From IMG/VR virus record IMGVR_UViG_3300042261_001312, positions 186,001-250,000 of that record: a DNA stretch of 64,000 bases, one strand, 5' to 3'. The first letter of the stretch is position 1. Every line of letters begins with the position of its first letter. Positions 23,650 to 49,041 of this stretch are shown one piece after another. The translations under genes were made by a program, and so were the position numbers. The notes below the pieces were generated by a model. The model had not been told where the DNA came from. It worked only from the letters and a program-made list of their open reading frames with translations, and did not search any database.

Positions 23650-24552
23650 ATGCGAAAAAAAATAACAACAGAAGAATTTATAAAAAAAGCACAATTGGTA
23701 CACGGTGATAAATATAAATATCATCATGTTGAATATACTGGATGTAAGAATAAAATAAATATTATTTGTGATAAGCATGGAGTTTTTAAACAAACGCCAG
23801 ATAAACATTTGTCGGGTCATGGCTGTGATAAATGTGTTGGATATGGTAAAACAACCAAAGATTTTATTATATCATCGAAATTAATTCATGGTGATAAGTA
23901 TGATTATTCTAATGTAAAATATTGTGGCATGAAAACCAATGTTAATATAATTTGTAATATACATGGAGTATTTACACAAACACCTGATGACCATTTACAT
24001 GGTCGTGGCTGTTATAAATGCGGATATGACAAAAATAGTAAATATTTTTCAAGCACAACAAACGAATTTATTGAAAAATCTAAATTAATTCATGGTGATA
24101 AATATGATTACTCTAAGACAAACTACGTTAATGCAAAAAATAAAATAACTATTGTTTGTAGAATACATGGTGAATTTACTCAAACACCAACAAATCATTT
24201 AAGTGGTAAAGGCTGTAAATTATGTTCAGAATCCAAGGGTGAATTAATAATTAAAAAATATTTGGATGTGAATAATGTTAAATACATTAGAGAAAAAACA
24301 TTTGACGAATGTAAAAATAAATTTAAATTATTTTTTGATTTTTACTTACCAGAAAAAAACATACTTGTTGAATATGATGGTGAACAACATTATAAATCAA
24401 TTGATTTTTTTGGAGGTAGAAGTGCATTTGAAAAATTAAAAACGAATGATAATATTAAAAATAATTTTGCACGTGCAAATGGCATTCAACTATTGCGAAT
24501 TAAATTTAATGAAATTAATAATATTGATAAAATTTTAAAAAATATCATATAA
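23650..24552 (+). CDS. free-standing putative homing endonuclease (DUF723-like repeats plus Vsr/DUF559-like domain)
   Basis: Three HGdKYdYS...C..HG.F.QTP..HL.G.GC repeats plus ESKGE...FDFYLP...VEYDGEQH. Start set to ATG 23650 (MRKKITTEEF) rather than 23590. Confidence 0.8.
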   Translation: MRKKITTEEFIKKAQLVHGDKYKYHHVEYTGCKNKINIICDKHGVFKQTPDKHLSGHGCDKCVGYGKTTKDFIISSKLIHGDKYDYSNVKYCGMKTNVNIICNIHGVFTQTPDDHLHGRGCYKCGYDKNSKYFSSTTNEFIEKSKLIHGDKYDYSKTNYVNAKNKITIVCRIHGEFTQTPTNHLSGKGCKLCSESKGELIIKKYLDVNNVKYIREKTFDECKNKFKLFFDFYLPEKNILVEYDGEQHYKSIDFFGGRSAFEKLKTNDNIKNNFARANGIQLLRIKFNEINNIDKILKNII

Positions 24553-26402: not shown

Positions 26403-27112
26403 TGAGAGATAGTTTAACAAATATCAAATTTATTGAACGTGCAAAATTAGTGCATGGTAATAAATACATATATAGTGCCTCGACATATACGGATGCTAGG
26501 CATAGTGTTGTGATATTGTGTCCCAAACATGGTCTTTTTACACAAAGACCTTTTGACCATTTAAATGGTTGTGGATGTAAAAAATGTGTTGGATTAAATC
26601 GCAAGACAAATGATGAATTTATTATTGAATCAAAAAAAATATTTGGTGATTTATTTTCTTATGATGATACAAATTATATAAATTCACAAACAAAGGTAAT
26701 TGTTAAATGTGTGCAACACGGAAATTTTCAAGTAACACCAAATAATCATTTATCTAAAAAACAGGGATGTCCCATATGTAAAGAATCAAAAGGTGAAAAG
26801 AAAATTGCTCAATTATTATATGACATGAAAGTTCAATTTATTAGAGAAAAAACTTTTGAGAATTGTGTTAGGAAAAAAAGAAAATTACCATTTGATTTTT
26901 ATTTACCCAATCATAATTTAGTTATTGAATATGATGGTAGACATCATTTCGAAATAATTGATGCTTTTGGTGGAAAAAATGGTTTTTCTGAAACACAAGA
27001 GAATGATAAGTTTAAAAATAATTTTTTACATGATAATAATATTAAATTATTGAGAATTCCATATAATCAATATGATAATATTGAAAAATTATTACAAAAT
27101 AATATATTTTAA
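26402..27112 (+). CDS. free-standing putative homing endonuclease (DUF723-like repeats plus Vsr/DUF559-like domain)
   Basis: Two Cys/His repeats plus ESKGE...FDFYLP...IEYDGRHH; TAATG overlaps at both ends. Confidence 0.8.
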   Translation: MRDSLTNIKFIERAKLVHGNKYIYSASTYTDARHSVVILCPKHGLFTQRPFDHLNGCGCKKCVGLNRKTNDEFIIESKKIFGDLFSYDDTNYINSQTKVIVKCVQHGNFQVTPNNHLSKKQGCPICKESKGEKKIAQLLYDMKVQFIREKTFENCVRKKRKLPFDFYLPNHNLVIEYDGRHHFEIIDAFGGKNGFSETQENDKFKNNFLHDNNIKLLRIPYNQYDNIEKLLQNNIF

Positions 27113-29694
27113 TGGAAGTAATCAAAAAAACTATATTACAAATAGTAACGACTGGAACTACAGGTGGCGATACTATTATTATTCCAGATTTGACCAAAGT
27201 CTATCATATGAAGATTGGGTTAATTGCTGAAGTAACTGATATTGGTTTTTTTGATGCATTTGGTGAATTTGTTCCAGTACCAACATCTACTACAACCACT
27301 ACAACAAGCACATCTACAACAACGACGTCTACAAGTACTTCCACTACAAGCACAACTAGTACGTCTACTAGTACATCCAGTACATCTACTACTTCAACAA
27401 GTACGTCTACAAGTACAACCAGTACTTCAACAACTAGTACAACAACTACGTTACCATATACTGGCTCATCAACAACGACAACAACTAGTACTTCAACCAC
27501 ATCAACATCAACAACTAGTACTTCAACCACATCAACATCAACAACAAGTACAAGTACGTCAACAACAAGTACCAGCACTTCAACGACTAGTACAACAACA
27601 TCATCACCCGATTGTTTATTTGGAAGTGGAACTGCTGAAGAATTAACAGCAGTGGTAATAAATGACCAAAGTTTTGATGTTTATGAAAATTCTCCAAATA
27701 GTACATTCATTGGTGATGTTATTTCGCCAGATGATCCTAATGTTACATATTCAATAATTGGTGGAAATACTGGCAATACGATGTCAATTGCTTCAAATAA
27801 TGGTGATTTAACTGTTGGCGATAATACGTTACTTGTATATGACACACACCCATTATTCTCATTGGATGTGAAAGTAACAAGCATTGCAGAACCATTATTA
27901 ACAGATACTGCAATAATAAGTGTTAACGTATTAAAAGTATGTACGGCAGCAACAACTTATGATTTAAGGTTTGTATCATCTTCAGGTGGTATTGGTGCAT
28001 TCAGTGTAGGAAAACTCACTGGAAATACATTAACAATTACTGATTATGTAATTGAATGGAGAAATGGTTCAAGAACAGGCGATGTAGTCTTTATTTCTGG
28101 TATGGGAACTGATGTCGCAATACAAGCACAACATCCATTTGTAAATGAACCAGTTGAGGGTGGTACATTATATCCAGTAATTAAATATGTAATAATTGGT
28201 GGTGTAACATATACTTCGATTAAAAATGTGCCAAATACATGCTATTCACCTGATCTTATAACATATATTAGTCCAATAGTGGTTCAAGCATATAATTGTA
28301 GCAACGGAACAACTGGCACATATTCACATATACTTACATATATTAATACATCAATGCCTGCAGACCAAGCCACACGTTCATTTAGATTTATTATTGGTAA
28401 TGATACGACAGAATTTGCGTTTATGTTTTATGGTTATAGTGTCGCTGACCGTATCACAATTAAACTTGTATCGAATGATGTAGAAACAACAATGGAAGAT
28501 TGGGTTGTTGGTGACGATAATATTGCCGATAATTTAACATCAATGCCTAGAATATATAAAAATCAATGGTATAGAGGTGTTATCGATTTAAAACAGCGCA
28601 CGTATGTTAGTGGTGATTATTTAAAAATTACGGTAGCACCAAGTTATAATGTACCATCACAAACAGATACTAACTGGCAATTGCAAATGAAATGTTTCAC
28701 AACTGCACTTCCTTTCAACTACGCACCCGCAAGTAATAGCGTTAATTATATTGATCCAAATTCATTTGTTGTAACTTGGAATAATGCAAATTGTGCATAC
28801 GATTTTGACTTTGTAACTGGTGCAGGACCTGCAAGCATATCAAGTACAAATGTTGGTACATATATGAGAGCATATTTTTATTGGTCAGTTAATTGGCAAT
28901 CAGCACAAAGAATATCAATACCGAGAAGCACATATGGCGGTTGGGGGTGGATTAAAGGCGGTTATACGTACACTACATTAAATGGGGTAATGACGATCAA
29001 GAAAGTCGGTTCAACATTAACATATAGTTTTACTAATGCAACTGACTACAATAATTATAAATCGGGATACAATACCACGATAGCAAATGCAAATTGGACG
29101 AATTATAGTACTGATACACAATCAGCCAATCATTATAAATTGTTTGAATTTGATCATAGGATTTCGATGACTGGTGGTGATACATATACTACAAAATACA
29201 TGTATTTTGGTCATGATTCAATATTTACTTTTGATGATATTAATTATAAAATAACGATTAATATGGCACAAATGCCTAATGAATATATTGACCAGACTTG
29301 TAGTAATGTATATGAAATAATAACGTCAGGACAAGGCACGGGAAGTCAATATGTATCAAATTTTATTGCAAGTGCTGATTTTGAAGTATCCACTATATTA
29401 GGAGAAGTTTCAAAATTTGATGCGAGATATTTATATACTGGTGTTTTGAATGCAACAACATACGATGTTGATTTACATCTAGAACTCCCATTCCCAGCAT
29501 TCTATGGAAACAATGCACCAAATTTATTACCGAATTGGTATCTTTATGGTAATGCATGGAAATTCCATAAATACTATTTAAGAATTGAAATAACAAATAA
29601 TTCAGACCCGATAAATAATTACAAAATTTACTCAAGACTAAATGCAAGTGGATATGACACTGGTGTATGGACGTTAATTAAATCAGTACCGTAA
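27112..29694 (+). CDS. virion-associated protein with mucin-like Thr/Ser stalk, cadherin-like domain and large distal domain
   Basis: ~108-aa T/S tract, then FDVYENSPNSTFIG...VTYSIIGGN...SIASNNGDLTV...FSLDVKVT...DTAIISVNV (cadherin pattern); located in the baseplate operon. Confidence 0.7.
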   Translation: MEVIKKTILQIVTTGTTGGDTIIIPDLTKVYHMKIGLIAEVTDIGFFDAFGEFVPVPTSTTTTTTSTSTTTTSTSTSTTSTTSTSTSTSSTSTTSTSTSTSTTSTSTTSTTTTLPYTGSSTTTTTSTSTTSTSTTSTSTTSTSTTSTSTSTTSTSTSTTSTTTSSPDCLFGSGTAEELTAVVINDQSFDVYENSPNSTFIGDVISPDDPNVTYSIIGGNTGNTMSIASNNGDLTVGDNTLLVYDTHPLFSLDVKVTSIAEPLLTDTAIISVNVLKVCTAATTYDLRFVSSSGGIGAFSVGKLTGNTLTITDYVIEWRNGSRTGDVVFISGMGTDVAIQAQHPFVNEPVEGGTLYPVIKYVIIGGVTYTSIKNVPNTCYSPDLITYISPIVVQAYNCSNGTTGTYSHILTYINTSMPADQATRSFRFIIGNDTTEFAFMFYGYSVADRITIKLVSNDVETTMEDWVVGDDNIADNLTSMPRIYKNQWYRGVIDLKQRTYVSGDYLKITVAPSYNVPSQTDTNWQLQMKCFTTALPFNYAPASNSVNYIDPNSFVVTWNNANCAYDFDFVTGAGPASISSTNVGTYMRAYFYWSVNWQSAQRISIPRSTYGGWGWIKGGYTYTTLNGVMTIKKVGSTLTYSFTNATDYNNYKSGYNTTIANANWTNYSTDTQSANHYKLFEFDHRISMTGGDTYTTKYMYFGHDSIFTFDDINYKITINMAQMPNEYIDQTCSNVYEIITSGQGTGSQYVSNFIASADFEVSTILGEVSKFDARYLYTGVLNATTYDVDLHLELPFPAFYGNNAPNLLPNWYLYGNAWKFHKYYLRIEITNNSDPINNYKIYSRLNASGYDTGVWTLIKSVP
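27283..27606 (+). repeat. Thr/Ser low-complexity coding tract 1
   Basis: About 108 codons, almost all ACN/TCN/AGY, interrupted once by LPYTG. Confidence 0.95.
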
Positions 29695-31163
29695 TGTTAA
29701 TAAAATTAAAATATAGTGGTCTAGGTGGCGATACAGGTCCTAATTTTTCGGTAACTCCCGATGTGGGTGTATCTGTTCCCGCAACTGTAACTAAAACAGA
29801 GTTACTTAATGGGGTTCTTGTGACTGTGGATGACTTAACTAATTCTATTACAATCACTTCCGAGGGTACATGTACTAATTCAAATGTTTTGAGTGTTATT
29901 CGTATAACAACCACAACCACGACAACAACTAGTACATCAACTACTTCAACGTCAACAACCAGTACATCTACGACAAGTACGTCAACCAGTACGTCTACAT
30001 CGACTAGTACCAGTACTTCAACAACTAGCACAAGTACATCTACATCGACTAGTACTTCAACAACTAGCACAAGTACTTCAACAACTAGCACAAGTACATC
30101 TACATCAACAAGTACCAGTACATCAACAACAAGTACTTCAACAACTAGCACAAGTACTTCTACAAGTACCAGTACGTCAACAAGTACTACTTCTACAACA
30201 AGTACTACAACAGCAGCACCACAAGATTATTATAGGTTGTATATGTGTCCGTCAAGTTCATATTATCAATCAGGACCGTACTCTCAAGGGACATATTCAA
30301 TAAATGATAGTTTTTATCTTGCGATAGGTGTTGATTTGTTTGCAACTTTTGTTATTGATGGTATTTCAAACTCAAGTTATGGATATACTAATATTCCAAG
30401 TTTAGGTACTCCAACTGGAACAGGATGCCCGGGTACAAGCACATCTACAACTACGTCAACCAGCACAAGTACTTCAACATCATCAACGAGCACAAGTACA
30501 TCTACATCGACTAGTACTTCAACAACTAGCACAAGTACTTCAACAAGTACAAGTACTTCAACAACTAGCACAAGTACTTCAACAAGTACAAGTACTTCAA
30601 CAACTAGCACAAGTACTTCAACAAGTACAAGTACTTCAACAACTAGCACAAGTACTTCAACTACTACTGCAAGTCCATCGCAAGTATATTTTTCATCAAA
30701 TGCATTAGCAATTAATAACAGTCAAGGTCAAACTTTCTCAATAACATTTGGTTATGATATTACTGCTTATTGTGATAATAATGGAACTAGTGGAGAAGAC
30801 CCAGTTCAAGCCACTACAACAATATCAGTTTCAACTAATGGTGGTGGTAGTTGGACTCAGATTGATAGTGTAACTGCTTCAGTATCTGGTGGTAATTATC
30901 CAGTCGAACAAAATGATACACAAAACGTAACTAATACTTATACAATTTATGGTATTACTGATGTTACACAAATACTCGTGACAGGTAGTTTCGATTGTTC
31001 TATTGGACTTAATACTCAGAATGGCTATATGACGGTTACAATAGATTCGGTAATGCCAGACTTTGGTATGACATCGATAATTTGTAATAATCAATATCTT
31101 GATGGATGTGGTGGTAGTAGTAATAATTGTACAATAGTTTCAACAACCACATCTTTTATGTAA
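29694..31163 (+). CDS. virion-associated protein with two mucin-like Thr/Ser tracts separating small beta-rich domains
   Basis: TAATG coupling; tracts at 29907-30212 and 30435-30668; Cys-containing beta-rich segments lie between them. Confidence 0.7.
   Translation: MLIKLKYSGLGGDTGPNFSVTPDVGVSVPATVTKTELLNGVLVTVDDLTNSITITSEGTCTNSNVLSVIRITTTTTTTTSTSTTSTSTTSTSTTSTSTSTSTSTSTSTSTTSTSTSTSTSTSTTSTSTSTTSTSTSTSTSTSTSTTSTSTTSTSTSTSTSTSTSTTSTTSTTTAAPQDYYRLYMCPSSSYYQSGPYSQGTYSINDSFYLAIGVDLFATFVIDGISNSSYGYTNIPSLGTPTGTGCPGTSTSTTTSTSTSTSTSSTSTSTSTSTSTSTTSTSTSTSTSTSTTSTSTSTSTSTSTTSTSTSTSTSTSTTSTSTSTTTASPSQVYFSSNALAINNSQGQTFSITFGYDITAYCDNNGTSGEDPVQATTTISVSTNGGGSWTQIDSVTASVSGGNYPVEQNDTQNVTNTYTIYGITDVTQILVTGSFDCSIGLNTQNGYMTVTIDSVMPDFGMTSIICNNQYLDGCGGSSNNCTIVSTTTSFM
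29907..30212 (+). repeat. Thr/Ser low-complexity coding tract 2
   Basis: 102 consecutive Thr/Ser codons. Confidence 0.95.
30435..30668 (+). repeat. Thr/Ser coding tract 3, containing three exact 39-bp tandem copies
   Basis: ACAAGTACTTCAACAAGTACAAGTACTTCAACAACTAGC at 30531, 30570 and 30609, plus a partial copy. Confidence 0.95.
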
Positions 31164-37593: not shown

Positions 37594-40167
37594 GTGGCAT
37601 TTATCGATAAAAGAGACCCAGTTGTTTTAAATGTGATGTTAACATCAAAGGGTAGAGAATTACTATCCACTGGTGATTTAACATTTAAGTATTTTGCTAT
37701 TGGTGATAGCGAAATTGATTATGGATTAACAAATGAAATCAATGCTGTTGAAAGTCATTTAAATTATAAACCATATCCATTTGATTTTAGTATAGCAAGA
37801 CCTGTTGATAAAAATCCCAAAATAATTTCATTCATACCCAGAAGTGTGTCTGCTACTACAACTGGTACATTATCTGGTGATCCATATAATTTAATAACTG
37901 CTGTACCAACAGTTCCATTTGAAATCGTTAATAAATCATCATCAATTGGTTTTTTCACGAATACTGGCACAACATTTATTACTGACACCAATCATGTTAA
38001 ACAACCTGATGTGATGATCGATGCATCTACAATAGTGGGTGGTAGAGACTTAGCATTAAGAAAATCACCAACATATGGAACAAATTTTAATGAACCATCA
38101 GTGGGTGATTTATTGTTGATAAAATGGAATATCTATACAAACACAACTGGAAATACAATAAATAAATATTCTCCATCACCATACTTATTTTATCAGATTG
38201 TGGCTAAAACAGGTATGTTAAGTAGCGATAATTTAACTATTACGGTTGATAGAAATTTACCGAATTTCTACGGATTTAATCCAACTGCAAATATAGGTGC
38301 AATTGTTTATTATAATTACATTAATTATAGCGGCGCAACAGTATTTTTAGACACACCTGCAGATTATATATCTAAAAGTGAATTATCTTTTATAAACAAT
38401 TCCGAATGTCCAACTATCATTTTCCCGTATTGGAATATGACAATCATTTATACTGAGGAAATTAGTGGTGTTCAGACTGGAGATAGAAAATACACGCAAT
38501 TTAACAACAAGTCTTTCGGTGGTTTTGTTTCGTACATTCAAAATCAAGCACCAATCAATAAAAAATTGGGTATAATTCATTATACGAATAATTCACCAGC
38601 AAATGTTTATGGCGAAGAATTCTATTTGAAAACTCCCAAGTTGGAAATTCCAACAATAATGTGGCACAAATCTACTGGTGCAACAATGGGTTTAACTTTA
38701 GTTCCGACAGGTGATAGTAAATTATTAACTGGTGAGACCAAATCGTTAAATACCACATATTATGATCTTGCAGATTTGAGTGGAAATATTGTTGGAAAAG
38801 TATTAACTGATTTAAAGATGTTTTTGATTGAAGATCAAGAATTATTGTTTGCTATGTCCTATAAATCAAATAGGTCATGGACTCTTCCTGATTTTCTTGT
38901 TGATAATGTTGGTGCTCCAGTAATTGCACCGCCAACTCCTGAACCACCAATACCAAATACGTCAACAACAACAAGTACGACAAGTACTACATCGACTAGT
39001 ACGACTACAACAAGTACGACAAGTACGTCTACATCAACAACCACAGTGCAACCAAATGCGAAAATATTCATTAATAATGATACCACTTCTGGTGTAATTG
39101 TAACTGGAGTAACGGTTAATAATATTGCAACAACTAACGTATATCCTGTATATCCTGCACATACTGCATTGGCTATATCATATAAATTGGGTACTTGTAT
39201 TATTAAAGTAGGAATTGTTGTTGTAGTAAGCGGTGGAACTATTGATTTCACTGACTCAAACAACATATTGACATCTAAATTAATTACGACTAGTGGTGTT
39301 TACCAGTTTACGGGAATGACATTAACTAATGGTACTACTTTGAATATGTCGTTATACACTGGTGTTGTACCTACTACCACATCAACAACTACGACTACAA
39401 GTACATCTACTACAACTACTAGTACATCTACAACTACGTCAACAAGTACTTCGACTACGTCAACAAGTACAACTAGTACAACTACTTTACCGCCTGCTCC
39501 TACGGTAGATACTCTCACATCAACAGGTTCAACATATACAACTGCAAATGTTAGAGGTGATGTTTTAAGTGCAGGAAGTTTAACTGTTATTGCAAGAGGT
39601 GTTGTTTACATTACTGCTACAGAATATGATAATGGCAACGGTATACCACCAGAAGCAGGAACAAGAGTATATGATGTTACAGGTGGAACTGGTACATTTA
39701 GTTTCTACGTATCAGGCTTAATGAGTGGTACTGAATATGTGTATAAGTCATTTGCAATCAATGAATTAAATAATATTGGATATTCAGATAATACTGAAAC
39801 ATTTACCACATTAGCAGCAACAACAACGACTACATTGCCAGTTGGAACTACAAATTTTAATGCGGGTGTTAGTAACGAAGTGACAGCACCATATACGATT
39901 ACGAGTGTTAAAGCAAATTCAGTAGAATTACTTACACATCCAGTGACGGCAGGTAATGGTGACGTTCATCCAATAATGCCTCAGACAAATGCAACAGTAG
40001 TTGTGAGTTTTACTGGCACATTAACTAGTCCATATACCCAGATAGTTTTGTGGAGAGATAGTGGCACTATAATAAGAAGTATAAATCCAACTGTATTGGC
40101 TGCTGGCTCATATACTTTCTATAATATAACGTATAATAATTTCTTGTGGATTACCTTAGTTCCTTAA
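37594..40167 (+). CDS. tail/baseplate protein, paralogue A: conserved N-terminal ~430 aa, two T/S tracts, FN3/Ig-like distal domains
   Basis: N-terminus nearly collinear with 40198 (LNVMLTSKGRELLSTG...GDSEIDY ... AMSYKSNRSWTLPD); FN3-like SGLMSGTEYVYKSFAIN. Confidence 0.7.
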   Translation: MAFIDKRDPVVLNVMLTSKGRELLSTGDLTFKYFAIGDSEIDYGLTNEINAVESHLNYKPYPFDFSIARPVDKNPKIISFIPRSVSATTTGTLSGDPYNLITAVPTVPFEIVNKSSSIGFFTNTGTTFITDTNHVKQPDVMIDASTIVGGRDLALRKSPTYGTNFNEPSVGDLLLIKWNIYTNTTGNTINKYSPSPYLFYQIVAKTGMLSSDNLTITVDRNLPNFYGFNPTANIGAIVYYNYINYSGATVFLDTPADYISKSELSFINNSECPTIIFPYWNMTIIYTEEISGVQTGDRKYTQFNNKSFGGFVSYIQNQAPINKKLGIIHYTNNSPANVYGEEFYLKTPKLEIPTIMWHKSTGATMGLTLVPTGDSKLLTGETKSLNTTYYDLADLSGNIVGKVLTDLKMFLIEDQELLFAMSYKSNRSWTLPDFLVDNVGAPVIAPPTPEPPIPNTSTTTSTTSTTSTSTTTTSTTSTSTSTTTVQPNAKIFINNDTTSGVIVTGVTVNNIATTNVYPVYPAHTALAISYKLGTCIIKVGIVVVVSGGTIDFTDSNNILTSKLITTSGVYQFTGMTLTNGTTLNMSLYTGVVPTTTSTTTTTSTSTTTTSTSTTTSTSTSTTSTSTTSTTTLPPAPTVDTLTSTGSTYTTANVRGDVLSAGSLTVIARGVVYITATEYDNGNGIPPEAGTRVYDVTGGTGTFSFYVSGLMSGTEYVYKSFAINELNNIGYSDNTETFTTLAATTTTTLPVGTTNFNAGVSNEVTAPYTITSVKANSVELLTHPVTAGNGDVHPIMPQTNATVVVSFTGTLTSPYTQIVLWRDSGTIIRSINPTVLAAGSYTFYNITYNNFLWITLVP
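38959..39045 (+). repeat. Thr/Ser coding tract 4
   Basis: 29 consecutive Thr/Ser codons preceded by a Pro-rich segment. Confidence 0.9.
39373..39486 (+). repeat. Thr/Ser coding tract 5
   Basis: 38 consecutive Thr/Ser codons. Confidence 0.9.
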
Positions 40168-40197: not shown

Positions 40198-42027
40198 ATG
40201 GCATTTATTGATATAAAAGACCCGCTAGTTTTAAATGTAATGTTAACATCGAAAGGTAGAGAATTATTATCTACTGGAAATTTAACATTCAAATATTTCG
40301 CTGTGGGTGATAGTGAAATTGATTATGGTTTTATTAAGGAAGTAAATATCGATGATGCCGAATATTCTGCATATGATTCAACAATTTTACAACCAACGGA
40401 TAAAAATCCAAGGATAATTTCTTTTATACCAAGTTTGCCGTCTGGTGATACATATAACACAATATCAGGACTTACAGCCACATCATATAATGTTACACAT
40501 CAAGTAGAACCAATTGGATTTTTTTCAAGCGGAGCAACTCAATTTATTGTGGATGCAGACCATGTTAAACAACCTGATGCAATGGTTTATGTAAATGGTG
40601 TAACTGGCGGTACTACATTGAGATTGAGAAAAGCACCAACATATGGAACAAGCGGTCAAGAACCAGCAATTGGTGATTTAGTTTTGGTTAAATGGGTGCA
40701 TTATGGACATACAACAGGGTATACTGTAAATAAAAATGTGCCAAGTCCATATTTAACCTATCAAATTATAGGCAAAAGCGGTATGTTGGCAAATGATGAC
40801 CTTACAGTCATTGTGGATAGAAGTCTACCAAATTTTAAAGGATTTAATTATTATAATGGTATTGCTGGTGCAATGATTTATTACAACTTCTCTAACTATA
40901 CTGGAAGCACAATATATAATGATTTAGAAACTGATTATATTAGTGAAAGCGTGTTGTCATTCACTCAAAATAATCAATGCCCAATTCCAGCATTTCCTTT
41001 TTGGAATATGTCAATTGTATATACCAGTGAAATTGCTGGTGTTATGTCTTTTCATAGAAAATATACTCAGTTTGATAGTAGAACGTATGGTGGTTTTGTT
41101 ACATATATACAAAATCAAATGCCAGTGTATGATAAATTAGGTATTATACACTATAGTAATGAATCACCAGCAAACACATATGGTGATGCGTTTAATTTAA
41201 AAACAGCCAGATTGGAAATTCCAACAATAATGTGGCATAAATCTATCACAAGAACATTGGGTGTTACATTAGTACCAACTGGTAGTACTAAGACCTTGGC
41301 AGGACTTGAAACTCAATATTATGATCTTGCAGATTTAAATGGAAATATTGTTGGAAAAGTGTTTATTGATTTGAAAATGTTTTTGATTGAAGATCAGGAA
41401 TTATTGTCAGCAATGTCATATAAATCAAATAGATCATGGACACTTCCAGATTATTATGTTGATGAAAAAATACCTACAACAACCACAACTAGTACAAGTA
41501 CTTCTACAACAACCACAACTAGTACAAGTACTACAAGTACAACCACAACTAGTACAAGTACAACTAGTACGAGCACAACTAGTACGAGCACAACAAGTAC
41601 CTCAACATCAACAACTAGTACAAGTACAACTAGTACAAGTACAACTAGTACGAGCACAACAAGTACTTCAACTACTAGTACGAGCACAACAAGTACTTCA
41701 ACTACTACAACTACATGTGCATTAACATTTAATGCTCCTTCATCTGAAGATGGTAACTTGATAGTTACAAATTCTTCTTCAAGTTTATATCATAACATAT
41801 TTGATTACATCAATATTATATTCACACCAGAGAATGCAATGCAATCATCAGGATATGATGTTTGGTATCAAGTATTCAGAATTAGAAGTGGAATAGGTTC
41901 AATCGTTTTGCAAGATAAGATTACAAATTGTGAAAATGGTGTACAAGCAAATGTATCTCCACAAATTCCTAATACGATTTGCGATGATGAATATTTTGTT
42001 TATTTATACTTAATTGAGCCAGTTTAA
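40198..42027 (+). CDS. tail/baseplate protein, paralogue B: conserved N-terminal domain, 80-aa T/S tract, short distal domain
   Basis: Shares the N-terminal domain with 37594; the two diverge completely after SWTLPD. Confidence 0.7.
   Translation: MAFIDIKDPLVLNVMLTSKGRELLSTGNLTFKYFAVGDSEIDYGFIKEVNIDDAEYSAYDSTILQPTDKNPRIISFIPSLPSGDTYNTISGLTATSYNVTHQVEPIGFFSSGATQFIVDADHVKQPDAMVYVNGVTGGTTLRLRKAPTYGTSGQEPAIGDLVLVKWVHYGHTTGYTVNKNVPSPYLTYQIIGKSGMLANDDLTVIVDRSLPNFKGFNYYNGIAGAMIYYNFSNYTGSTIYNDLETDYISESVLSFTQNNQCPIPAFPFWNMSIVYTSEIAGVMSFHRKYTQFDSRTYGGFVTYIQNQMPVYDKLGIIHYSNESPANTYGDAFNLKTARLEIPTIMWHKSITRTLGVTLVPTGSTKTLAGLETQYYDLADLNGNIVGKVFIDLKMFLIEDQELLSAMSYKSNRSWTLPDYYVDEKIPTTTTTSTSTSTTTTTSTSTTSTTTTSTSTTSTSTTSTSTTSTSTSTTSTSTTSTSTTSTSTTSTSTTSTSTTSTSTTTTTCALTFNAPSSEDGNLIVTNSSSSLYHNIFDYINIIFTPENAMQSSGYDVWYQVFRIRSGIGSIVLQDKITNCENGVQANVSPQIPNTICDDEYFVYLYLIEPV
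41476..41715 (+). repeat. Thr/Ser coding tract 6
   Basis: 80 consecutive Thr/Ser codons, built largely of TTSTS units. Confidence 0.95.
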
Positions 42028-42111
42028 AATGGGGATATTTGTAGATATATCTTGAATACACAAAATTTTTACAAAAAATCAATAAAACATGAATCAATTT
42101 TGAAATTATAA

Positions 42112-42120
42112 GTATTTATA
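42112..42120 (+). promoter_or_regulatory. GTATTTATA putative late promoter of the glycosylation operon
   Basis: 37 nt before ATG 42149. Confidence 0.7.
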
Positions 42121-42148
42121 ATAAATAATAAAAAATTATAAATAACTT

Positions 42149-43171
42149 ATGAAGCAATTAAGATTTGTTAGCGCACAACCTGCAACGAAATATTATGCAT
42201 GGCAGGTAGAAGTGATGATAAATAATTTTATCGAGATGGGTATTAATGCAAATCACATTGATGTAATTGCATGGAAAGAAAATGGCATAATACCTGAAGA
42301 ATGGAGTAAACTTGCCAATAGATACGCAGCAAGATTCTTTTTTTATGATGACACGAGAGATACCAAATATTATGTGTCATCAATCCGACCAAACATATTA
42401 AAACAACATTTTAAAGCACATTCATATTTAAAATATGATGTGATATTTTATCATGATTGCGACATTATATTCACAAAAAATCCAAGAGAATGGATTACCG
42501 ATGAAATGCTAAGTGACGACATTTGGTATGGTTCTGACACTCGCTGGTACATTTCACACTCATACATTAAAAGCAAAGGCGATGATGTGATGAAAAAAAT
42601 GTGTGACATCATGCAGATTGATGAACAAATTGTTGAAGAAAATGAATTAAACTGTATTGGTGCTCAATATCTTATGAAAAATATCGATTATTCGTTTTGG
42701 GATATGGTTGAGAAAGACAGCGAGAAACTGTTTAAGGATGTCACGAATTTAAACACACAAAAGATCATGCTGGATAAAATGAGATTCGAAGAAGAAAAAA
42801 AAGAATGGGAAAAAAATAATCCAGAAGCACTTGCCAAAGGTGAAAAATATTCAAGACCTCTTTATCACGAACTCCAAATTTGGTGTGCAGATATGTGGGC
42901 AGTTCTTTGGGGTGCATGGAGATTAGGATATAAAACAAATTGCCATCCAAATTACGAATTTAGTTGGGCGACATCAAATGAAGAAGAATATCAAAGAATG
43001 AATATCATGCATAATGCTGGGGTTGCATCAGCAAATGAGGGATTGTTTTATAAGGCATCGTATATGAATGAATATCCCTACAATAAAAATTTAACAATAA
43101 GAGAAGGCACTTCCAGTAAAAAATACTACGAGTGGGTTCAAAAAACAGAAAAAATAACAGCATTACAATAA
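42149..43171 (+). CDS. GT-A glycosyltransferase resembling plant peptidyl-serine alpha-galactosyltransferase / hydroxyproline O-arabinosyltransferase (GT96/GT95)
   Basis: Ordered motifs YYAWQ, YVSSIRP, FYHDCDII (DxD), IGAQYLMK, IWCADMWAVLWGAWRLG parallel the remembered SERGT1/HPAT pattern YxxWQ, YxxxNKP, ILDADMI, GG..xM, WxxEMYxYxFGAA.xG. Confidence 0.65.
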   Translation: MKQLRFVSAQPATKYYAWQVEVMINNFIEMGINANHIDVIAWKENGIIPEEWSKLANRYAARFFFYDDTRDTKYYVSSIRPNILKQHFKAHSYLKYDVIFYHDCDIIFTKNPREWITDEMLSDDIWYGSDTRWYISHSYIKSKGDDVMKKMCDIMQIDEQIVEENELNCIGAQYLMKNIDYSFWDMVEKDSEKLFKDVTNLNTQKIMLDKMRFEEEKKEWEKNNPEALAKGEKYSRPLYHELQIWCADMWAVLWGAWRLGYKTNCHPNYEFSWATSNEEEYQRMNIMHNAGVASANEGLFYKASYMNEYPYNKNLTIREGTSSKKYYEWVQKTEKITALQ

Positions 43172-43824
43172 TGGAAAAAATAATACATCAAATATGGGTC
43201 GGTCCTTATGAAATTCCAGAAAGGGAACAATATTTTATCGAAACAGTAAAAAAATATAATCCGACATTTCAACATATGCTATGGAAAGATGATAATTTGC
43301 CAGAATTACCTGAAAAAATTCAAATATTATGTGATGCATTTAAAAAACAAAAAGATTATGCACATATTGCAGATGTCTTGAGAATTTTTTTGGTTAAACA
43401 ATATGGTGGTTTGTATATTGATGTTGATTTTAAGCCGATCAAACCTTTTGATTTGTTTGACAATAATAATAATTCATTATTTGTCTGTTATCATGGTGGT
43501 AATGACTATACAATGCCAAACGGAGTTTTTGGTGGTAAAAAAGATTCGGAACAAGTTAATTTCATTTATGACTTGGTTGATATTAAACTTGGTGGATGGT
43601 ACGGACCGAGTTGGCTCGGTGGCGCAGTCAAAAAATATTTAAATTTAGACTACGAAACTGATCATGAAGTGGTGAAAGAAAAATGTGTTGAGAATAATAT
43701 CGAATATTGCTTATTTCCATTATTTGAACAATATTTTCAACATTTAGCATTATATTCATGGTCGCCAGAAAATAAGAGAAATTTTGAAACAGGTAATATT
43801 AATTATTTAGAATGGACGAAATAG
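43171..43824 (+). CDS. GT32-family (OCH1/A4GALT-like, DxD) glycosyltransferase
   Basis: KIIHQIWVG, AHIADVLRI, YGGLYIDVDF, GP.WL. Start set to ATG 43171 (TAATG overlap). Confidence 0.88.
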   Translation: MEKIIHQIWVGPYEIPEREQYFIETVKKYNPTFQHMLWKDDNLPELPEKIQILCDAFKKQKDYAHIADVLRIFLVKQYGGLYIDVDFKPIKPFDLFDNNNNSLFVCYHGGNDYTMPNGVFGGKKDSEQVNFIYDLVDIKLGGWYGPSWLGGAVKKYLNLDYETDHEVVKEKCVENNIEYCLFPLFEQYFQHLALYSWSPENKRNFETGNINYLEWTK

Positions 43825-44438
43825 AAAAAATATTTTCAGGAGATAATCATCTATATGGTAGAACAGATATAGATACTTTTAGTGTAAGTGGCTGTGGGTC
43901 ACAAATGGATAACTCAACATTAAATGTCAGGGAAAATTTATATAATTTCTTAATTAAATATAATATTAAAAGCATTTTCGATGCACCATGTGGCGATTAT
44001 TGGTGGATGAGACATGTTGATTTAAAGGAAATTGAATATATTGGCGGTGATATAATTACCGAACAAATGAAGAAATTGAATAAGAATTTCCCTGATAAAA
44101 AATTCATAAGATTTGATGTTATTAAAGACAAATTCCCAGATGTTGATTTATTGTTTTGTCGTGATTGTCTATTTCATTTTAGCAAAAAGGATAAAATAAT
44201 GACATTTGAAAATTTTATTAATTCAAACATAAAATATTTGTTAATGAGTAATCATCCATTGAGTACAAATAATTTAGACATTTCCACTGGTGATTTTACA
44301 CACATTAACTGGCAATTATCTCCGTGGAATTTCGGTGAACCAGTTGACATCTTATATGATAGTAATAGTGGATATGATACCAAAGAATTACAATTATATA
44401 CTAAAGAACAAATTTTAAAATATTTAAAAAATGGGTAA
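43812..44438 (+). CDS. class I SAM-dependent methyltransferase (possible glycan O-methyltransferase)
   Basis: SGCGS N-terminal motif, motif I SIFDAPCGD, YIGGDII, FDVI, DLLFCRDCLFHF. Confidence 0.8.
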   Translation: MDEIEKIFSGDNHLYGRTDIDTFSVSGCGSQMDNSTLNVRENLYNFLIKYNIKSIFDAPCGDYWWMRHVDLKEIEYIGGDIITEQMKKLNKNFPDKKFIRFDVIKDKFPDVDLLFCRDCLFHFSKKDKIMTFENFINSNIKYLLMSNHPLSTNNLDISTGDFTHINWQLSPWNFGEPVDILYDSNSGYDTKELQLYTKEQILKYLKNG

Positions 44439-45225
44439 GAAAGTAAGTTTTGTCTGTACGACATATGGAAGATTTTATTGTGTTAGGCGCATTGTTGCAC
44501 AATATCATGCACAAACATATCAAAATAAAGAATTAATTATTTTCAATCAAGATATGGAACATCCTTTTGAATTAGGTTTTGAAGATGATTCAATCATTGT
44601 CATCAATAATGATACAAATTACATAACAGGAATGTTATATACAAATAGAGGTGATATTTGTAGAGATGCTGTAACACATGCAACTGGTGATTATTTCATG
44701 TTGGCTGATGATGATGATATTTATTTACCTTGGCATTTACAACAGGCTGTTGAAGGTATTGAGGAAATGGGTACAGATGCATGGAAACCTGAAAAAAGTT
44801 TATTCGCTGTTGCTGATAGAGTTGAACTTTGCCAAAATACTATGGAAGCAAGTGTCATTATTAAAATGGATAGAATCAGAGAAATTGGATTTAGAAATGA
44901 TTTAACTGGTTACGAGGGATTGAGTTGGTATACCAAATTAAGAGACGAAAAACAGTTATTGGAAAATAATAAAAATTATATTCCGTCATATTGTTTTAAT
45001 TGGAGTGATCCTTCTGAAATTGCTGGGCATAAACAAAGTGGTGACATTGACAACCCAAATAATTTTGAAAATCATAGAAGAGCCAGTTGTGATTATGCAA
45101 CAGAACCATTAACGCCAATTACCGCAGATGAATTGGTAAGCGTATATGAAAAGTATTTTAATTGGTTGAGAAATAACCAAGATAAAATTAATAAAGATTA
45201 CTATGTGAGGTATTTTGATAATTAA
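44431..45225 (+). CDS. GT2-family glycosyltransferase
   Basis: VSFVCTTYGR...QTYQNKELIIFN...ATGDYFMLADDDDIYLPWHL. Confidence 0.88.
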   Translation: MGKKVSFVCTTYGRFYCVRRIVAQYHAQTYQNKELIIFNQDMEHPFELGFEDDSIIVINNDTNYITGMLYTNRGDICRDAVTHATGDYFMLADDDDIYLPWHLQQAVEGIEEMGTDAWKPEKSLFAVADRVELCQNTMEASVIIKMDRIREIGFRNDLTGYEGLSWYTKLRDEKQLLENNKNYIPSYCFNWSDPSEIAGHKQSGDIDNPNNFENHRRASCDYATEPLTPITADELVSVYEKYFNWLRNNQDKINKDYYVRYFDN

Positions 45226-45238
45226 ATTTAGATTATCA

Positions 45239-45247
45239 GTATTTATA
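45239..45247 (+). promoter_or_regulatory. GTATTTATA putative late promoter
   Basis: 22 nt before ATG 45261. Confidence 0.75.
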
Positions 45248-45260
45248 GAAAAAAATAAAT

Positions 45261-46013
45261 ATGGCAGACGGATATTCAATATTTACGACATACATTTTAG
45301 TACCAACAGGAACGACATCAGGTTTAGGTTATAATTATAGTGAAGCAATTCATTGCAACTATATTAAAAAAACGCAATCAACAATTGCCAATCAAAGTAT
45401 GGGTCAAATTACTATTAATTTCCCCAATATCAGTGATTTTAAATTTCTGAGTGATGACCCTGTTAATAATACTGGATATACGGCAAATAAAATATATGCA
45501 TTGGTACAAATTATAAGTAATAGTGGCTATACAAGCATTGATGAAGTAAAAGCAATTTCTACTGAATGGAGAATGGTTGATATTACAAATCAAATTCCCA
45601 CACATACCGATGGAAATGCATTAACCGCAGCAGAATTGACAAGTGTGGTATTTAAAGTTCCATTCAATAATTATTATAGTTATCCAATATATAATTTAAA
45701 TTATCTCAATTATCCAACAAAAGAAGTTGGAGATGATGATAAATTGTCTTTTGGTGACGAAATTTATTTTTTTGGTAATGTTTCCACTGAAATAAAAGCA
45801 ATTGCATATACAACAGACCTTTCAATTAATTTACCTTTAAATCAATTCAATTCATCTACGAATAGCACTTGGACACAAGATGATAGCGTAGCAATTAGTG
45901 AAATTGGAATTTATGATGCCAATAAGAATTTGGTTGCTATTGGTAAATTAAATAACCCAATTTTAAAAGACGAAACAATCGCCAGAACTATAGTTTTCAA
46001 CATTGATTTCTAA
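45261..46013 (+). CDS. tail/baseplate structural protein
   Basis: C-terminal ISEIGIYDANKNLVAIGKLNNPILK resembles the EIGL(F/Y)D..G.L(I/V)A module of tail-fibre attachment/collar proteins. Confidence 0.6.
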   Translation: MADGYSIFTTYILVPTGTTSGLGYNYSEAIHCNYIKKTQSTIANQSMGQITINFPNISDFKFLSDDPVNNTGYTANKIYALVQIISNSGYTSIDEVKAISTEWRMVDITNQIPTHTDGNALTAAELTSVVFKVPFNNYYSYPIYNLNYLNYPTKEVGDDDKLSFGDEIYFFGNVSTEIKAIAYTTDLSINLPLNQFNSSTNSTWTQDDSVAISEIGIYDANKNLVAIGKLNNPILKDETIARTIVFNIDF

Positions 46014-46060
46014 TTATAGAAAAAAAATCATAAAATTTTACTATTTTTTATAAATTCTTA

Positions 46061-46068
46061 GTATTTAT
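46061..46068 (+). promoter_or_regulatory. GTATTTAT putative late promoter
   Basis: 41 nt before ATG 46102. Confidence 0.6.
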
Positions 46069-46101
46069 TATAAATTATTAGAATATTAGTTTATAATAAA
46101 C

Positions 46102-46299
46102 ATGAAAGAATTATTAACACTTGACGAAACAAAGCCAAAGTCTATTATTATAGATGGAAATCTACATAATAGATTTAAAATGCTATGTAAGGGAAAAAGC
46201 ATGAAGATTGGCGGGGTTATTGAAGATTTAATTAAATTATACTTAAATAATTCAAAAGTAGTACAAAAAATGATAGATGAGCACAAAGAAAGTCTATAA
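46102..46299 (+). CDS. small ribbon-helix-helix-like DNA-binding protein
   Basis: KSIIIDGNLHNRFKMLC...IGGVIEDLIKLYL fits the strand-helix-helix (CopG/Arc/ParG) pattern. Confidence 0.6.
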   Translation: MKELLTLDETKPKSIIIDGNLHNRFKMLCKGKSMKIGGVIEDLIKLYLNNSKVVQKMIDEHKESL

Positions 46300-46300
46300 T

Positions 46301-46912
46301 ATGGAAAAATACATATGGTCTTTGGATATAAGCACCACAAATATTGGTAGTGCATTGTGGGATTCTAAAGGAAAATTGATTGAATTAAAACACCTTGAAT
46401 TGAAAACTGATAAGAATGTGCCAGTTGAGGATAGAGATATTCATAAGGCAGAAATCTTCAGAAAATATGTTCATGAATATAAGGAACGAATCTTGAATGA
46501 ACTAAATGGTGAAATTATTCATATTGTTGTTGAAGAACCTCTTGGTGGAAGCAACAATGCGAATACTGTTTCACTATTGTATGGATTTAATGGCATTTGT
46601 AGATATATTTTGTATATGGCATTCGACAAATACCCAATGAAAATTTCCGTACATGATTCACGAAAGTTATTCTGTCATGAATTGGTAAAAGTGAGTTTTA
46701 ATAAGAAAGGTGAAAAATCTGAAGTATTATCGTTCCCAAAAGAATATATTAAGGATAAAAAGTTGTATATCTGGAAAAAAGTTTGTAAATTAGAACCCCA
46801 AATTGAGTGGTTTTACAAGAAAGACGGTCAACCAAAAGATATGAATTACGATATGAGCGATTCATATTGTGTCGGCTATGCTGGACTGAAGACACTGGGG
46901 ATAATAAAATGA
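46301..46912 (+). CDS. ruvC: RuvC-like Holliday-junction resolvase
   Basis: IWSLDISTTNIG (D1), IVVEEP (E), DMSDSYC (DxxD). Start set to ATG 46301. Confidence 0.75.
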   Translation: MEKYIWSLDISTTNIGSALWDSKGKLIELKHLELKTDKNVPVEDRDIHKAEIFRKYVHEYKERILNELNGEIIHIVVEEPLGGSNNANTVSLLYGFNGICRYILYMAFDKYPMKISVHDSRKLFCHELVKVSFNKKGEKSEVLSFPKEYIKDKKLYIWKKVCKLEPQIEWFYKKDGQPKDMNYDMSDSYCVGYAGLKTLGIIK

Positions 46913-47217
46913 AATACATATACTTAATTAAGTCAGTAGAGGACAGTTATTACAAAATTGGAATATCTAAACATCCAAACAAACGTTTATCACAATTACA
47001 AACGGGAAATTCAGCACATTTAAAATTAATTGGTACGTATCAATCTGAATATGCCAATCAGATTGAAGGAACATTGCAAAGACGATATTCACATTTACAT
47101 AAAGAGGGTGAATGGTTTGACATGCCTATTGACATCGAACTTTCATTTCTGAATGAATGTAAGAAAATAGAAGAAACATTAAGTTCATTAAAAAGAAGCG
47201 GTAATATTTTCATTTGA
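46909..47217 (+). CDS. T5orf172/MUG113-type GIY-YIG nuclease domain protein
   Basis: YIYLIK...YKIGISKHPNKRLSQLQTGN...E..L...GEWF; ATGA overlap at 46909. Confidence 0.85.
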   Translation: MKYIYLIKSVEDSYYKIGISKHPNKRLSQLQTGNSAHLKLIGTYQSEYANQIEGTLQRRYSHLHKEGEWFDMPIDIELSFLNECKKIEETLSSLKRSGNIFI

Positions 47218-47283: not shown

Positions 47284-49041
47284 ATGTTTGAATATAAGGG
47301 AATTTATAATAGTAGTAATACTGAATCACGTAATTATGCACGTACTGGCATGAAAATTCCAGATTCACCGACCGTGAACGAAAAATTTACCGAAATCGCA
47401 ACATCAATCAATCAATTATCCTCCTTGACTGGCTCTAGTGGTGGTGCAATTAATGTAACCTATGCTGAATTGGTAAGTTTAATCAATATTTCTGGACTAA
47501 CCATTAATCAAACTTATAAACTAACAGATTATCGAACAGTTCATTATATGTTTGATTATAATGTAAGGTTAAATGAAATTAATACTGGCGAATTAGAACC
47601 ATTGTTGTTAACAGCAATATCTACAAATAGTTTATCCCAAATTGCTAAATCTACTTTATATCCACAAGATATAATTAATTATGATTGGAAATCGGATTAT
47701 TGGATTCAAGATATAGCATTTGCTACTGCTGAAAATATCAGTGGAACTACTATGAGTCCAGATTTAACTAATGTTACGTTAATACCTAATTATAAGGGTG
47801 TTATATATCGCAGAGAAGATACTAAAAATAATGTAATATTGGGTTATGATTTCAGACATGTTAAGTTTAGAAGATGGAAATTTAACTATCCAATATGGGA
47901 TTCTGGAACTACATATAATTTAGACGAAAGGGTTCAAGTGCCATCTGATGGAGTGTATTTTTCTTCAGTAAGTGGAAATACTGATAATTTGGTTACTGAT
48001 ACCACAAAATGGTCGAAAATTATTGATTATAATTTAACAGAATATTGGTGTTGTAATTCGTCAGATGCTTTAGATGTTAATGATTTTATTGATGCATATA
48101 CTTTTCACGGATTTGATCAGTGGAATACCTATGATATTAGTGTAAAAGATGTTATAATTAATTCACTTAATGATACATATACGCAATTTTGGGGATATAT
48201 TGGATCAAGTTTAAGTAATTCAGTTTTTTATTTGGGAACTAATAATGATACATATCAAAGTTATACAACATTTGATATAAATATTGCCCCTTTTTTTGAA
48301 TTAAATACTATTGGAGATGATTTTAATAGCAATAACATTGGAATTTTATCCAATACCAACATCATAGGAAATGCTTTCATTCTAAACAAAATAGGAAATT
48401 ATTTTCAAAGCAATATCATAGGAAATACTTTTGGAATGAACATCGCAGGAAATGATTTTCAAGGCAATATCATAGAATATCAATCTGTTTACAATATTAT
48501 TGGAAATTCTTTTCAATCCAACACAATAGGAATTGGTTTTCAAAAAAACAACATAGGAGATGATTTTAAAAACAATAATTTGGAATATAATTTTTTTCAA
48601 AATACCATAGGAAATAGTTTTACTCAAAATAAAATAAAAAATAATTTCTATAACAACACCATAGAAACTTATTTCTTTAGTAATACCATAGGATATAGAT
48701 TTAATAAAAATAGCATAGGAAATAGTTTCAATCAAAACACAGTTGGAAATGATTTTAAAAATAATACTATAGGGCATGGCTTACAATTCAATACTATTGG
48801 AAATGATTTTAAAATCAATACAGTTTTTAGTAAAATATACAACTTAACAATACCAACTGGCGTAACATTTCAATACAATACAATAAGAGATGGTATAGAT
48901 TTCACTGGTATTGATTTCAGTTCCTCAACACATGTTTACTCTACATATAACTGTGATTTATTTACAACGCCAAATGGAACAATAAAATTAAGTTATTGTG
49001 ATAATTCTGGAGTAATTCAGGTAGTAAATGCTAATGCTTAA
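47284..49041 (+). CDS. putative tail fibre/spike protein with (N-x-I-G-N-x-F) beta-solenoid repeats
   Basis: Many imperfect ~11-aa repeats N[TI]IG[NY]xFxxN in the C-terminal third; N-terminal YKLTDYRTVH module. Confidence 0.65.
   Translation: MFEYKGIYNSSNTESRNYARTGMKIPDSPTVNEKFTEIATSINQLSSLTGSSGGAINVTYAELVSLINISGLTINQTYKLTDYRTVHYMFDYNVRLNEINTGELEPLLLTAISTNSLSQIAKSTLYPQDIINYDWKSDYWIQDIAFATAENISGTTMSPDLTNVTLIPNYKGVIYRREDTKNNVILGYDFRHVKFRRWKFNYPIWDSGTTYNLDERVQVPSDGVYFSSVSGNTDNLVTDTTKWSKIIDYNLTEYWCCNSSDALDVNDFIDAYTFHGFDQWNTYDISVKDVIINSLNDTYTQFWGYIGSSLSNSVFYLGTNNDTYQSYTTFDINIAPFFELNTIGDDFNSNNIGILSNTNIIGNAFILNKIGNYFQSNIIGNTFGMNIAGNDFQGNIIEYQSVYNIIGNSFQSNTIGIGFQKNNIGDDFKNNNLEYNFFQNTIGNSFTQNKIKNNFYNNTIETYFFSNTIGYRFNKNSIGNSFNQNTVGNDFKNNTIGHGLQFNTIGNDFKINTVFSKIYNLTIPTGVTFQYNTIRDGIDFTGIDFSSSTHVYSTYNCDLFTTPNGTIKLSYCDNSGVIQVVNANA

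Follow-up and report, generated by a model that had tools for sequence, protein, structure and literature searches.

A remote phage homologue of HPAT/SGT1 glycosyltransferases that probably initiates O-glycosylation on threonine/serine tracts of virion proteins

What does a phage glycosyltransferase act on when its gene directly follows one for a protein with a long, unbroken run of threonine and serine? The locus that raises this question lies in a stretch of 64,000 nucleotides (the window; positions 186,001 to 250,000 of the 327,676 bp virus record IMGVR_UViG_3300042261_001312), which has about 30% G+C and holds nearly all of its genes on the + strand. The jumbo-phage gene, at 42149..43171 (+), encodes an HPAT-like glycosyltransferase of the GT-A type. 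We propose, at roughly two chances in three, that its product is a soluble cytoplasmic enzyme that puts the first sugar on poly-threonine/serine (T/S) tracts of virion proteins, and that enzymes encoded downstream extend and methylate the glycan. It is a distant relative of enzymes that initiate sugar chains on plant extensins, and probably the initiating O-glycosyltransferase for these tracts; since genes of this family stand directly after the gene for a T/S-tract virion protein in many unrelated phages, the enzyme most likely starts mucin-like coats on the phage particle.

The gene is a single open reading frame (ORF) of 340 amino acids that begins with ATG and has no internal stop. Its translation contains YYAWQ (amino acids 15-19), YVSSIRP (75-81), HDCDII (102-107), GAQYLMK (171-177) and WCADMWAVLWGAWRLG (245-260), the five motifs from which the original prediction had argued for a phage homologue of plant peptidyl-serine/hydroxyproline O-glycosyltransferases, and in the order given there. 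The protein has no signal peptide or transmembrane segment (the Kyte-Doolittle maximum over 19 residues is 0.77), and the lack of a hydrophobic segment points to a soluble, cytoplasmic enzyme. Searches of Pfam, NCBIfam and PDB sequences with the window protein and a shallow family profile returned no named glycosyltransferase family, and the sole PHROGs match was phrog_4417, labelled 'unknown function' (2e-56). The family is large, with 2,699 matches in a database clustered at 90%, all unnamed, and 945 representatives at 50% identity. It is present in 75 cultured-phage records, from phages of Enterococcus, Lactobacillus, Staphylococcus, Lactococcus, Clostridium, Chryseobacterium and Arcanobacterium; all of the 40 records listed are hypothetical or unannotated.

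An AlphaFold2 model (25 sequences; pLDDT 92.7, pTM 0.89) has the first beta-strand of the fold at the very start of the protein (residues 4-11). Foldseek returned 109 PDB matches at E ≤ 1e-3, and nearly all of the top 50 are GT-A enzymes. The best solved matches were WbbM, UGGT (GT24), LgtC, glycogenin and XXYLT1 (GT8) and GTA/GTB (GT6), with E from 2e-6 to 1e-4, TM-scores of just 0.40-0.49 and identities of 8-14%. The families of WbbM, UGGT, LgtC, glycogenin, XXYLT1 and GTA/GTB are retaining, and because this holds for all of the closest solved folds the phage enzyme is probably retaining as well. D103 and D105 (the DxD motif), Q173, Q243, W245, M249 and H288 are invariant in an alignment of distant phage homologues that extends to 28% identity, so that the predicted model and the conservation agree on a GT-A fold with DxD and a C-terminal histidine. 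The window protein and its closest relatives also have a charged helical insert of about 27 amino acids (residues ~203-229, window 42755-42835), which most members lack and which AlphaFold2 models within a long helix (residues 181-223).

The T/S tracts said earlier to neighbour the gene are real, and uninterrupted runs of 29-102 residues occur in four window proteins. Directly upstream of the glycosyltransferase lies the gene for putative acceptor protein 2 (40198..42027, +; 609 amino acids), which is laid out as a conserved 425-residue N-domain, an 80-residue T/S tract (nucleotides 41476-41715) and a C-terminal domain. Putative acceptor protein 1 (37594..40167, +; 857 amino acids) has two tracts, at nucleotides 38959-39045 and 39373-39486. 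The N-domains of the two proteins (37594-38883 and 40198-41472, +) are paralogues with 62% identity over 425 amino acids. They belong to a large phage family of 496 homologues, in which the domain stands alone or carries varied C-terminal extensions (fn3, Fib_succ_major); none of the 120 homologues listed has an informative name, and in the ESM Atlas the domain falls in unnamed viral clusters only. The other two T/S-tract proteins are encoded at 27112..29694 (+; 860 amino acids, tracts of 56 and 47 residues) and 29694..31163 (+; 489 amino acids, tracts of 102 and 78 residues). The first ~70 residues of the latter match the N-terminus of T/S proteins that precede the glycosyltransferase in other viral loci. 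All four genes are downstream of a baseplate-wedge gene at 24552-26402. Three Val/Leu-rich antisense ORFs (38859-39266, 39300-39518 and 41454-41687, -) lie exactly over the T/S tracts and were rejected as genes, being by-products of the ACN/TCN repeats.

The association with tracts recurs far beyond the window. We counted a tract when some 20-residue window of the immediately upstream same-strand ORF held at least 16 serines or threonines. Among the 61 distinct IMG/VR loci with enough upstream sequence, 42 had such an ORF next to the gene, against 8 of 361 background ORFs from other parts of these loci. Masking of the tracts leaves at least eight families of upstream proteins without detectable similarity to one another, and the globular parts of the T/S proteins from the window recur in just three other loci. 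With at least eight unrelated families upstream, the constant partner of the glycosyltransferase is the tract and not any particular protein.

Cultured phages show the same arrangement, with a T/S-tract protein directly upstream in 8 of 9. The major tail protein of phiFL1A ends in ...TTTTSTTTTTTSSTTTTTTT and the tail tube protein of phiCTP1 in ...ETTTTTNAPITTTTTTV, while half of a small Semele protein annotated 'major tail protein' is poly-threonine. The pattern is also found in the TPWB06 major tail protein, in orf13 of phage 1706 ('major structural protein') and in R3.3 and SAC12B; in Chryseobacterium phage MA9V-3 the tract is internal to the upstream protein. In phiFL1A, phiCTP1, TPWB06, 1706 and R3.3 the glycosyltransferase gene comes directly after the major tail or structural protein gene, and it is embedded in structural modules, flanked by the genes for the major tail protein and the tail chaperones. 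Comparative gene context thus strongly supports the link between the enzyme and neighbouring T/S tracts that had been drawn from the window alone. A separate observation concerns the Arcanobacterium phage TPWB06 (L288:3164-3926), whose major tail protein ends in nine threonines and is overlapped by an out-of-frame ORF of 69 amino acids, near-pure poly-threonine, through which a programmed frameshift may extend the tail tube protein.

Could this synteny be a coincidence, with the enzyme acting on hydroxymethyl-base DNA, host wall polysaccharide, teichoic acid or lipid? Many phage glycosyltransferases do act on DNA or host surface glycans (PMC12619734), the top Foldseek matches include the polysaccharide and lipopolysaccharide enzymes WbbM and LgtC, and 19 of the 61 loci have no strict adjacent tract. 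A non-protein acceptor is nonetheless hard to square with an association that extends over at least eight unrelated acceptor families and over sipho-, myo- and jumbo phages of three host phyla (Bacillota, Actinomycetota and Bacteroidota), or with the place of the gene inside structural modules. The protein also has no membrane segment for a lipid-linked acceptor, and a sister clade of the family resides in clusters for ribosomally synthesized and post-translationally modified peptides (RiPPs). On the strength of these four points we rejected DNA or host-surface modification as the leading interpretation, and we consider it quite improbable.

The sister clade is bacterial. In genomes sampled at one per species, the family occurs mostly in Bacteroidota (Chitinophaga, Pedobacter, Sphingobacterium, Mucilaginibacter and others). 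Single-domain copies on contigs of metagenome-assembled genomes again lie downstream of T/S proteins. Those on chromosomes have two domains and about 580 amino acids, with no T/S ORF nearby, and adjoin genes for LanC-like, LanB, radical-SAM (S-adenosylmethionine), C39-ABC (ATP-binding cassette) exporter and thioredoxin-like proteins (L215-L285; for example L222:1869-10038 and L215:1577-9107). Of the 96 immediate neighbours of chromosomal copies, 37 are LANC_like, and 57 Bacteroidota loci have a LanC-like ORF no more than 5 kb away. In a FastTree phylogeny the LanC-linked sequences (65 rows) and the viral T/S-linked ones (74 rows), the window enzyme among them, form separate clades with support of 99 and 97 respectively, and a single change of context label is needed on the tree. 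Both contexts, T/S tracts and lanthipeptide clusters, point to serine or threonine of peptides or proteins as acceptors, and not to polysaccharide or lipid. The neighbourhoods of the two-domain Bacteroidota enzymes, in lanthipeptide-type clusters, suggest glycosylated lanthipeptides.

How close is the enzyme to the plant proteins with which it had been compared? The Pfam model of HPAT, PF23452 (gathering score 23.9 bits), matched none of the 154 family members scanned, the window protein included, at cut-offs of E ≤ 1 for the window protein, E ≤ 10 for 9 members, E ≤ 0.01 for 71 representatives and E ≤ 10 for 72. A stepping-stone search of 143 representatives against Pfam likewise found none that reached PF23452. 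To gather HPAT and SGT sequences we used the motif W-[VI]-x-E-M-Y-[AG]-Y, as a lead only, and scanned metagenome contigs for stretches of DNA that encode it. The scan gave 120 loci, many with long ORFs and extended conservation around the motif, and 10 of 10 long metagenomic ORFs tested matched PF23452 above its gathering score, at 26-438 bits. In viral contigs the pattern had a single match, apparently by chance. Two HPAT-like ORFs (L117 and L135) scored above 430 bits and share YSKWQ, YIVLNRP, MAEPDHV, IGNSPVI, WVLEMYAYAVASALHG and IIHYTYG. An SGT1-like ORF (L144, 140 bits) has YFDWQ, YPAINKP, ILDADMI and WISEMYGYSFGAAEVG, and so holds almost verbatim the plant motifs cited in the original prediction. 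On its metagenome contig (Ga0127504_1060634; L144:509-3094) this ORF of 862 amino acids has two copies of the complete HPAT-family motif set, either through tandem duplication of the domain or because two genes are fused.

When 167 domains of the phage family were compared with 53 PF23452 domains by profile-profile alignment in hhalign, the probability was 93.7% (P 1.9e-7) over 253 columns of a local alignment, and a second comparison gave 92.5% (P 5e-7, 238 columns); a shallow family profile against PF23452 proteins reached 79.9%. On the same scale, HPAT-like against SGT-like sequences score 99.7% (P 5e-26), and the phage family against either lies at about 1e-5 to 1e-7. The alignment is colinear over ~240-250 columns and reproduces the pairing once made by eye: YYAWQ with Y(S/F)(K/D)WQ, SSIRP with LNRP or INKP, HDCDII with LDADMI or AEPDHV, IGAQY with IGNSP or VGG, and WCADMWA with W(V/I)(L/S)EMY(A/G)Y. 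A further pair, the sixth, consists of IMHNAG and IIHYTYG. The ESM Atlas agrees independently: among its named clusters, those that carry PF23452 (feature scores 0.96-0.97) and DUF7164 come closest, ahead of GT6 and GT8 clusters at 0.88, and the structure of a close relative has TM-scores of 0.73-0.75 to HPAT-bearing clusters and 0.62 to the GT8 cluster.

These values have to be weighed against the idea that the resemblance to HPAT and SGT1 is generic to GT-A enzymes with a DxD motif and that the phage protein is a divergent GT8-like enzyme. Such an origin would fit the failure of every member to match PF23452, the weaker scores when subgroups were compared (64% against HPAT-like, 80% against SGT-like) and the GT8, GT24 and GT6 identity of the solved neighbours. 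A GT-A fold with DxD is common to those enzymes, several of which act on proteins or protein-linked glycans. The same profile, however, scored 0.3% against GT32-like and GT2 enzymes, themselves DxD GT-A families, and 0.5-0.9% (P 0.06-0.12) against reversed alignments. The match to HPAT is also full-length and colinear across six motifs that include DxD and the C-terminal histidine, and in the Atlas HPAT clusters come ahead of GT6 and GT8 by both features and TM-score. GT8 and GT6 differ in a further respect: PF01501 (Glyco_transf_8) matched in none of the family scans, no Pfam GT8 or GT6 model matched this domain (three Glyco_transf_6 matches belong to multi-domain fusion proteins), and the similarity to those families is at the level of fold only. 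We rejected generic resemblance as the source of the HPAT similarity on the comparator and reversed controls, the colinear six-motif match and the Atlas ranking, and regard it as very improbable.

By profile comparison the phage enzyme is truly, though remotely, homologous to the HPAT/SGT1 catalytic domain, and belongs to a sister family and not to the HPAT family itself. Of the GT95/GT96-like identity put forward in the original prediction, remote homology thus stands and membership does not, with 0 of 154 proteins reaching PF23452 and no membrane anchor. The best solved structures are GT8, GT24 and GT6 enzymes, and lipid- or polysaccharide-acting GT8/GT24 enzymes had been named in advance as evidence against the assignment if GT95/96 similarity were absent; no GT95/96 entry is among the PDB matches, and the PDB ranking therefore does not refute a GT95/96 relation. 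The view of the window protein as a viral member of a eukaryotic family gave way to a broader picture, since it is no lone outlier and its 945 representatives at 50% include a large chromosomal clade in Bacteroidota.

Which step does the enzyme catalyse? Its stop codon TAA overlaps the ATG of a GT32-like glycosyltransferase gene (43171..43824, +; TAATG at 43169-43173) with a Gly_transf_sug DXD domain (Pfam PF04488, 1.6e-15), probably an elongating enzyme. There follow a SAM-dependent methyltransferase (43812..44438, +; phrog_3382), which overlaps the preceding gene by 13 nucleotides and is a possible sugar O-methyltransferase, and a GT2 glycosyltransferase (44431..45225, +; Pfam PF00535, 2.8e-6; 8-nucleotide overlap), again a probable elongating enzyme. 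A scan of 41900-46200 for promoters and terminators gave nothing better than shuffled sequence. With three glycosyltransferase genes in one overlapping block, and with UGGT and XXYLT1, extenders of protein-linked glycans, among the closest solved folds, the HPAT-like enzyme might instead elongate a protein glycan whose first sugar is added by the GT2 enzyme, the GT32-like enzyme or a host transferase. The HPAT-like domain is, however, the constant partner of the tracts, and the glycosyltransferases that accompany it vary or are absent: GT2 at ~70% identity lies downstream in 8 other loci and GT32-like homologues in 2 (L010 and L046). In phiFL1A (38.7 kb) no other gene is annotated as a glycosyltransferase; that it is the sole candidate there favours an initiating role for the family. 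Fusions speak in the same direction, in that the domain is usually N-terminal and varied second glycosyltransferase domains follow. One metagenomic protein of 1161 amino acids (P0122) joins HPAT-like, Gly_transf_sug (GT32-like) and GT2 domains in the order of the window genes at 42149, 43171 and 44431, and other fusions add GT6, GT7C, GT29, GT25 or GT61 domains. HPAT and SGT1, the only detectable annotated relatives, are moreover initiating enzymes (PMC4908140, PMC8012813). We therefore judge an elongating role unlikely.

Several points weigh against initiation on T/S tracts of the virion. Searches of the literature found no report of glycosylation by this family, nothing relevant on phage or bacterial HPAT homologues and glycosylated poly-threonine tails, and no mass-spectrometry or staining data for any phage that carries the family. 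The tracts could be plain flexible linkers. The window phage has three glycosyltransferases, and nothing separates the initiating from the elongating step. The family fails the PF23452 model, and function therefore cannot be transferred by membership. The N-domain of the putative acceptors is not identifiable as a virion protein, with no Pfam or PHROG match and an AlphaFold2 pLDDT of 52.8. Among the 19 of 61 viral loci that lack a strict tract in the adjacent ORF, 6 are near the threshold. The glycosyltransferase gene of Planchet follows a capsid protein gene without a tract, and the major tail protein of this phage, 2 kb away, has a T-rich end. Finally, many of the viral loci are related aquatic contigs, so that the 42 of 61 are not independent events and the association is partly inflated; what supports the tract link independently is that the acceptor families are unrelated and the host groups distant.

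On the reading that we favour, infection would most likely proceed as follows. The glycosyltransferase, dependent on a divalent metal, would move the first sugar from a nucleotide sugar to threonine and serine hydroxyls in the poly-T/S tracts of virion proteins that have just been synthesized and are not yet assembled. The targets in the window phage would be the two proteins just upstream and the two encoded close to the baseplate genes; small siphophages would carry the target at the C-terminus of the major tail or capsid protein, as its poly-threonine tail. The GT32-like enzyme, the methyltransferase and the GT2 enzyme would then extend and methylate the glycan. The product would be mucin-like: stiff linkers or C-terminal tails on the particle surface, shielded from proteases and antibodies.

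The proposed activity has counterparts in several known systems. In plants and algae, hydroxyproline O-arabinosyltransferases (HPAT, GT95) and peptidyl-serine alpha-galactosyltransferase (SGT1/SERGT1, GT96) attach the first sugar directly to hydroxy-amino acids of structural proteins that are repetitive and extended (PMC4908140, PMC8012813), and initiation on repetitive structural proteins is the role we propose for the phage enzyme. The catalytic domains are homologous, with colinear Y..WQ, RP/KP, DxD, G-G/A-x and W..(D/E)M(W/Y) motifs and a C-terminal histidine. The plant enzymes are Golgi type-II membrane proteins (PMC6322572), whereas the phage enzyme is predicted to be soluble and cytoplasmic, without a type-II membrane anchor. 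Its likely acceptors also differ, being poly-Thr/Ser tracts and not hydroxyproline or Ser-Hyp4. In extensin-type repeats, HPAT transfers L-arabinofuranose to hydroxyproline, and SGT1 alpha-galactose to serine. To our knowledge, bacteria would not be expected to supply hydroxyproline-rich acceptors. The family is encoded by phages and Bacteroidota, is unmatched by PF23452 and is far more distant from HPAT and SGT than these are from each other.

In passages of PMC12619734 and PMC13313380 that cite Freeman et al. (2023), glycosyltransferases of mycobacteriophages, some accompanied by a methyltransferase, are associated with glycans that capsid and tail-tube subunits carry at their C-termini. The present phages would likewise decorate their own virions. 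As expected of phage virion O-glycosylation systems, the glycosyltransferase gene here lies in or next to the structural module and adjoins that of the presumed modified protein; in the window it follows the genes of the baseplate-distal T/S proteins. The present system differs from the mycobacteriophage one in combining an HPAT-like GT-A enzyme with a poly-T/S tract, and in its carriers, which are phages of Bacillota, Actinomycetota (Arcanobacterium) and Bacteroidota and aquatic jumbo phages.

In Gram-positive bacteria, the long Ser/Thr repeats of serine-rich-repeat adhesins are O-glycosylated in the cytoplasm by a dedicated initiating glycosyltransferase and then by several others. The initiating GtfA/GtfB are GT4 enzymes with a GT-B fold, whereas the phage enzyme is GT-A by its model and structural neighbours, so the two are analogous and not homologous. 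For the Bacteroidota sister clade the nearest comparison is with RiPP tailoring glycosyltransferases, since its position beside LanC-like, LanB and C39-ABC genes implies peptide Ser/Thr/Cys acceptors. Known glycocin glycosyltransferases are of the GT2 family; the Bacteroidota proteins differ from them in being two-domain (~580 amino acids) and of the HPAT-like lineage.

HPAT-like GT-A enzymes and phage virion glycosylation are both known kinds, of which the present system is a variant. In its widest form the proposal is of a widespread, unrecognised mucin-type glycosylation of tailed phages, from 36-kb Enterococcus siphophages to 330-kb aquatic jumbo phages, in which a phrog_4417 initiator would act on a portable poly-Thr/Ser tag carried by unrelated capsid, tail-tube and fibre proteins. 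In Bacteroidota, enzymes of the same lineage would glycosylate lanthipeptides, and plant and algal GT95/GT96 would have in this lineage their prokaryotic sister and possibly their source. We advance this wider proposal tentatively, as falling a little short of an even chance. If the proposed action on T/S tracts holds, it would give a function to a family annotated 'hypothetical protein' across 945 clusters at 50% and 75 cultured-phage records, and would make the poly-threonine tails of major tail and capsid proteins predicted glycosylation sites. It would bear on phage immunogenicity and clearance in therapy, on the adsorption and stability of dairy and gut phages, and on the reading of virion structures and proteomes in which shifts of density or mass are unexplained. 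The membrane-bound plant HPAT and SGT1, of which no structure is among the PDB matches, would also gain a prokaryotic relative that is soluble and easy to express, and a large set of Bacteroidota lanthipeptide clusters would be flagged as probably making glycosylated peptides.

Beyond the glycosylation genes, the window continues on the + strand with a DNA-metabolism block (46277-46912, 46807-47217, 49197-50645 and 56258-59590) that comprises a RuvC-like resolvase, a small ORF with a GIY-YIG/T5orf172-like motif seen by eye only, and SbcD-like and SbcC-like nucleases. At 47284-49041 (+) lies the gene for a 585-amino-acid protein with no PHROG match, the C-terminal half of which is made of short, beta-helix-like repeats of the 'IGN.F..N' type.

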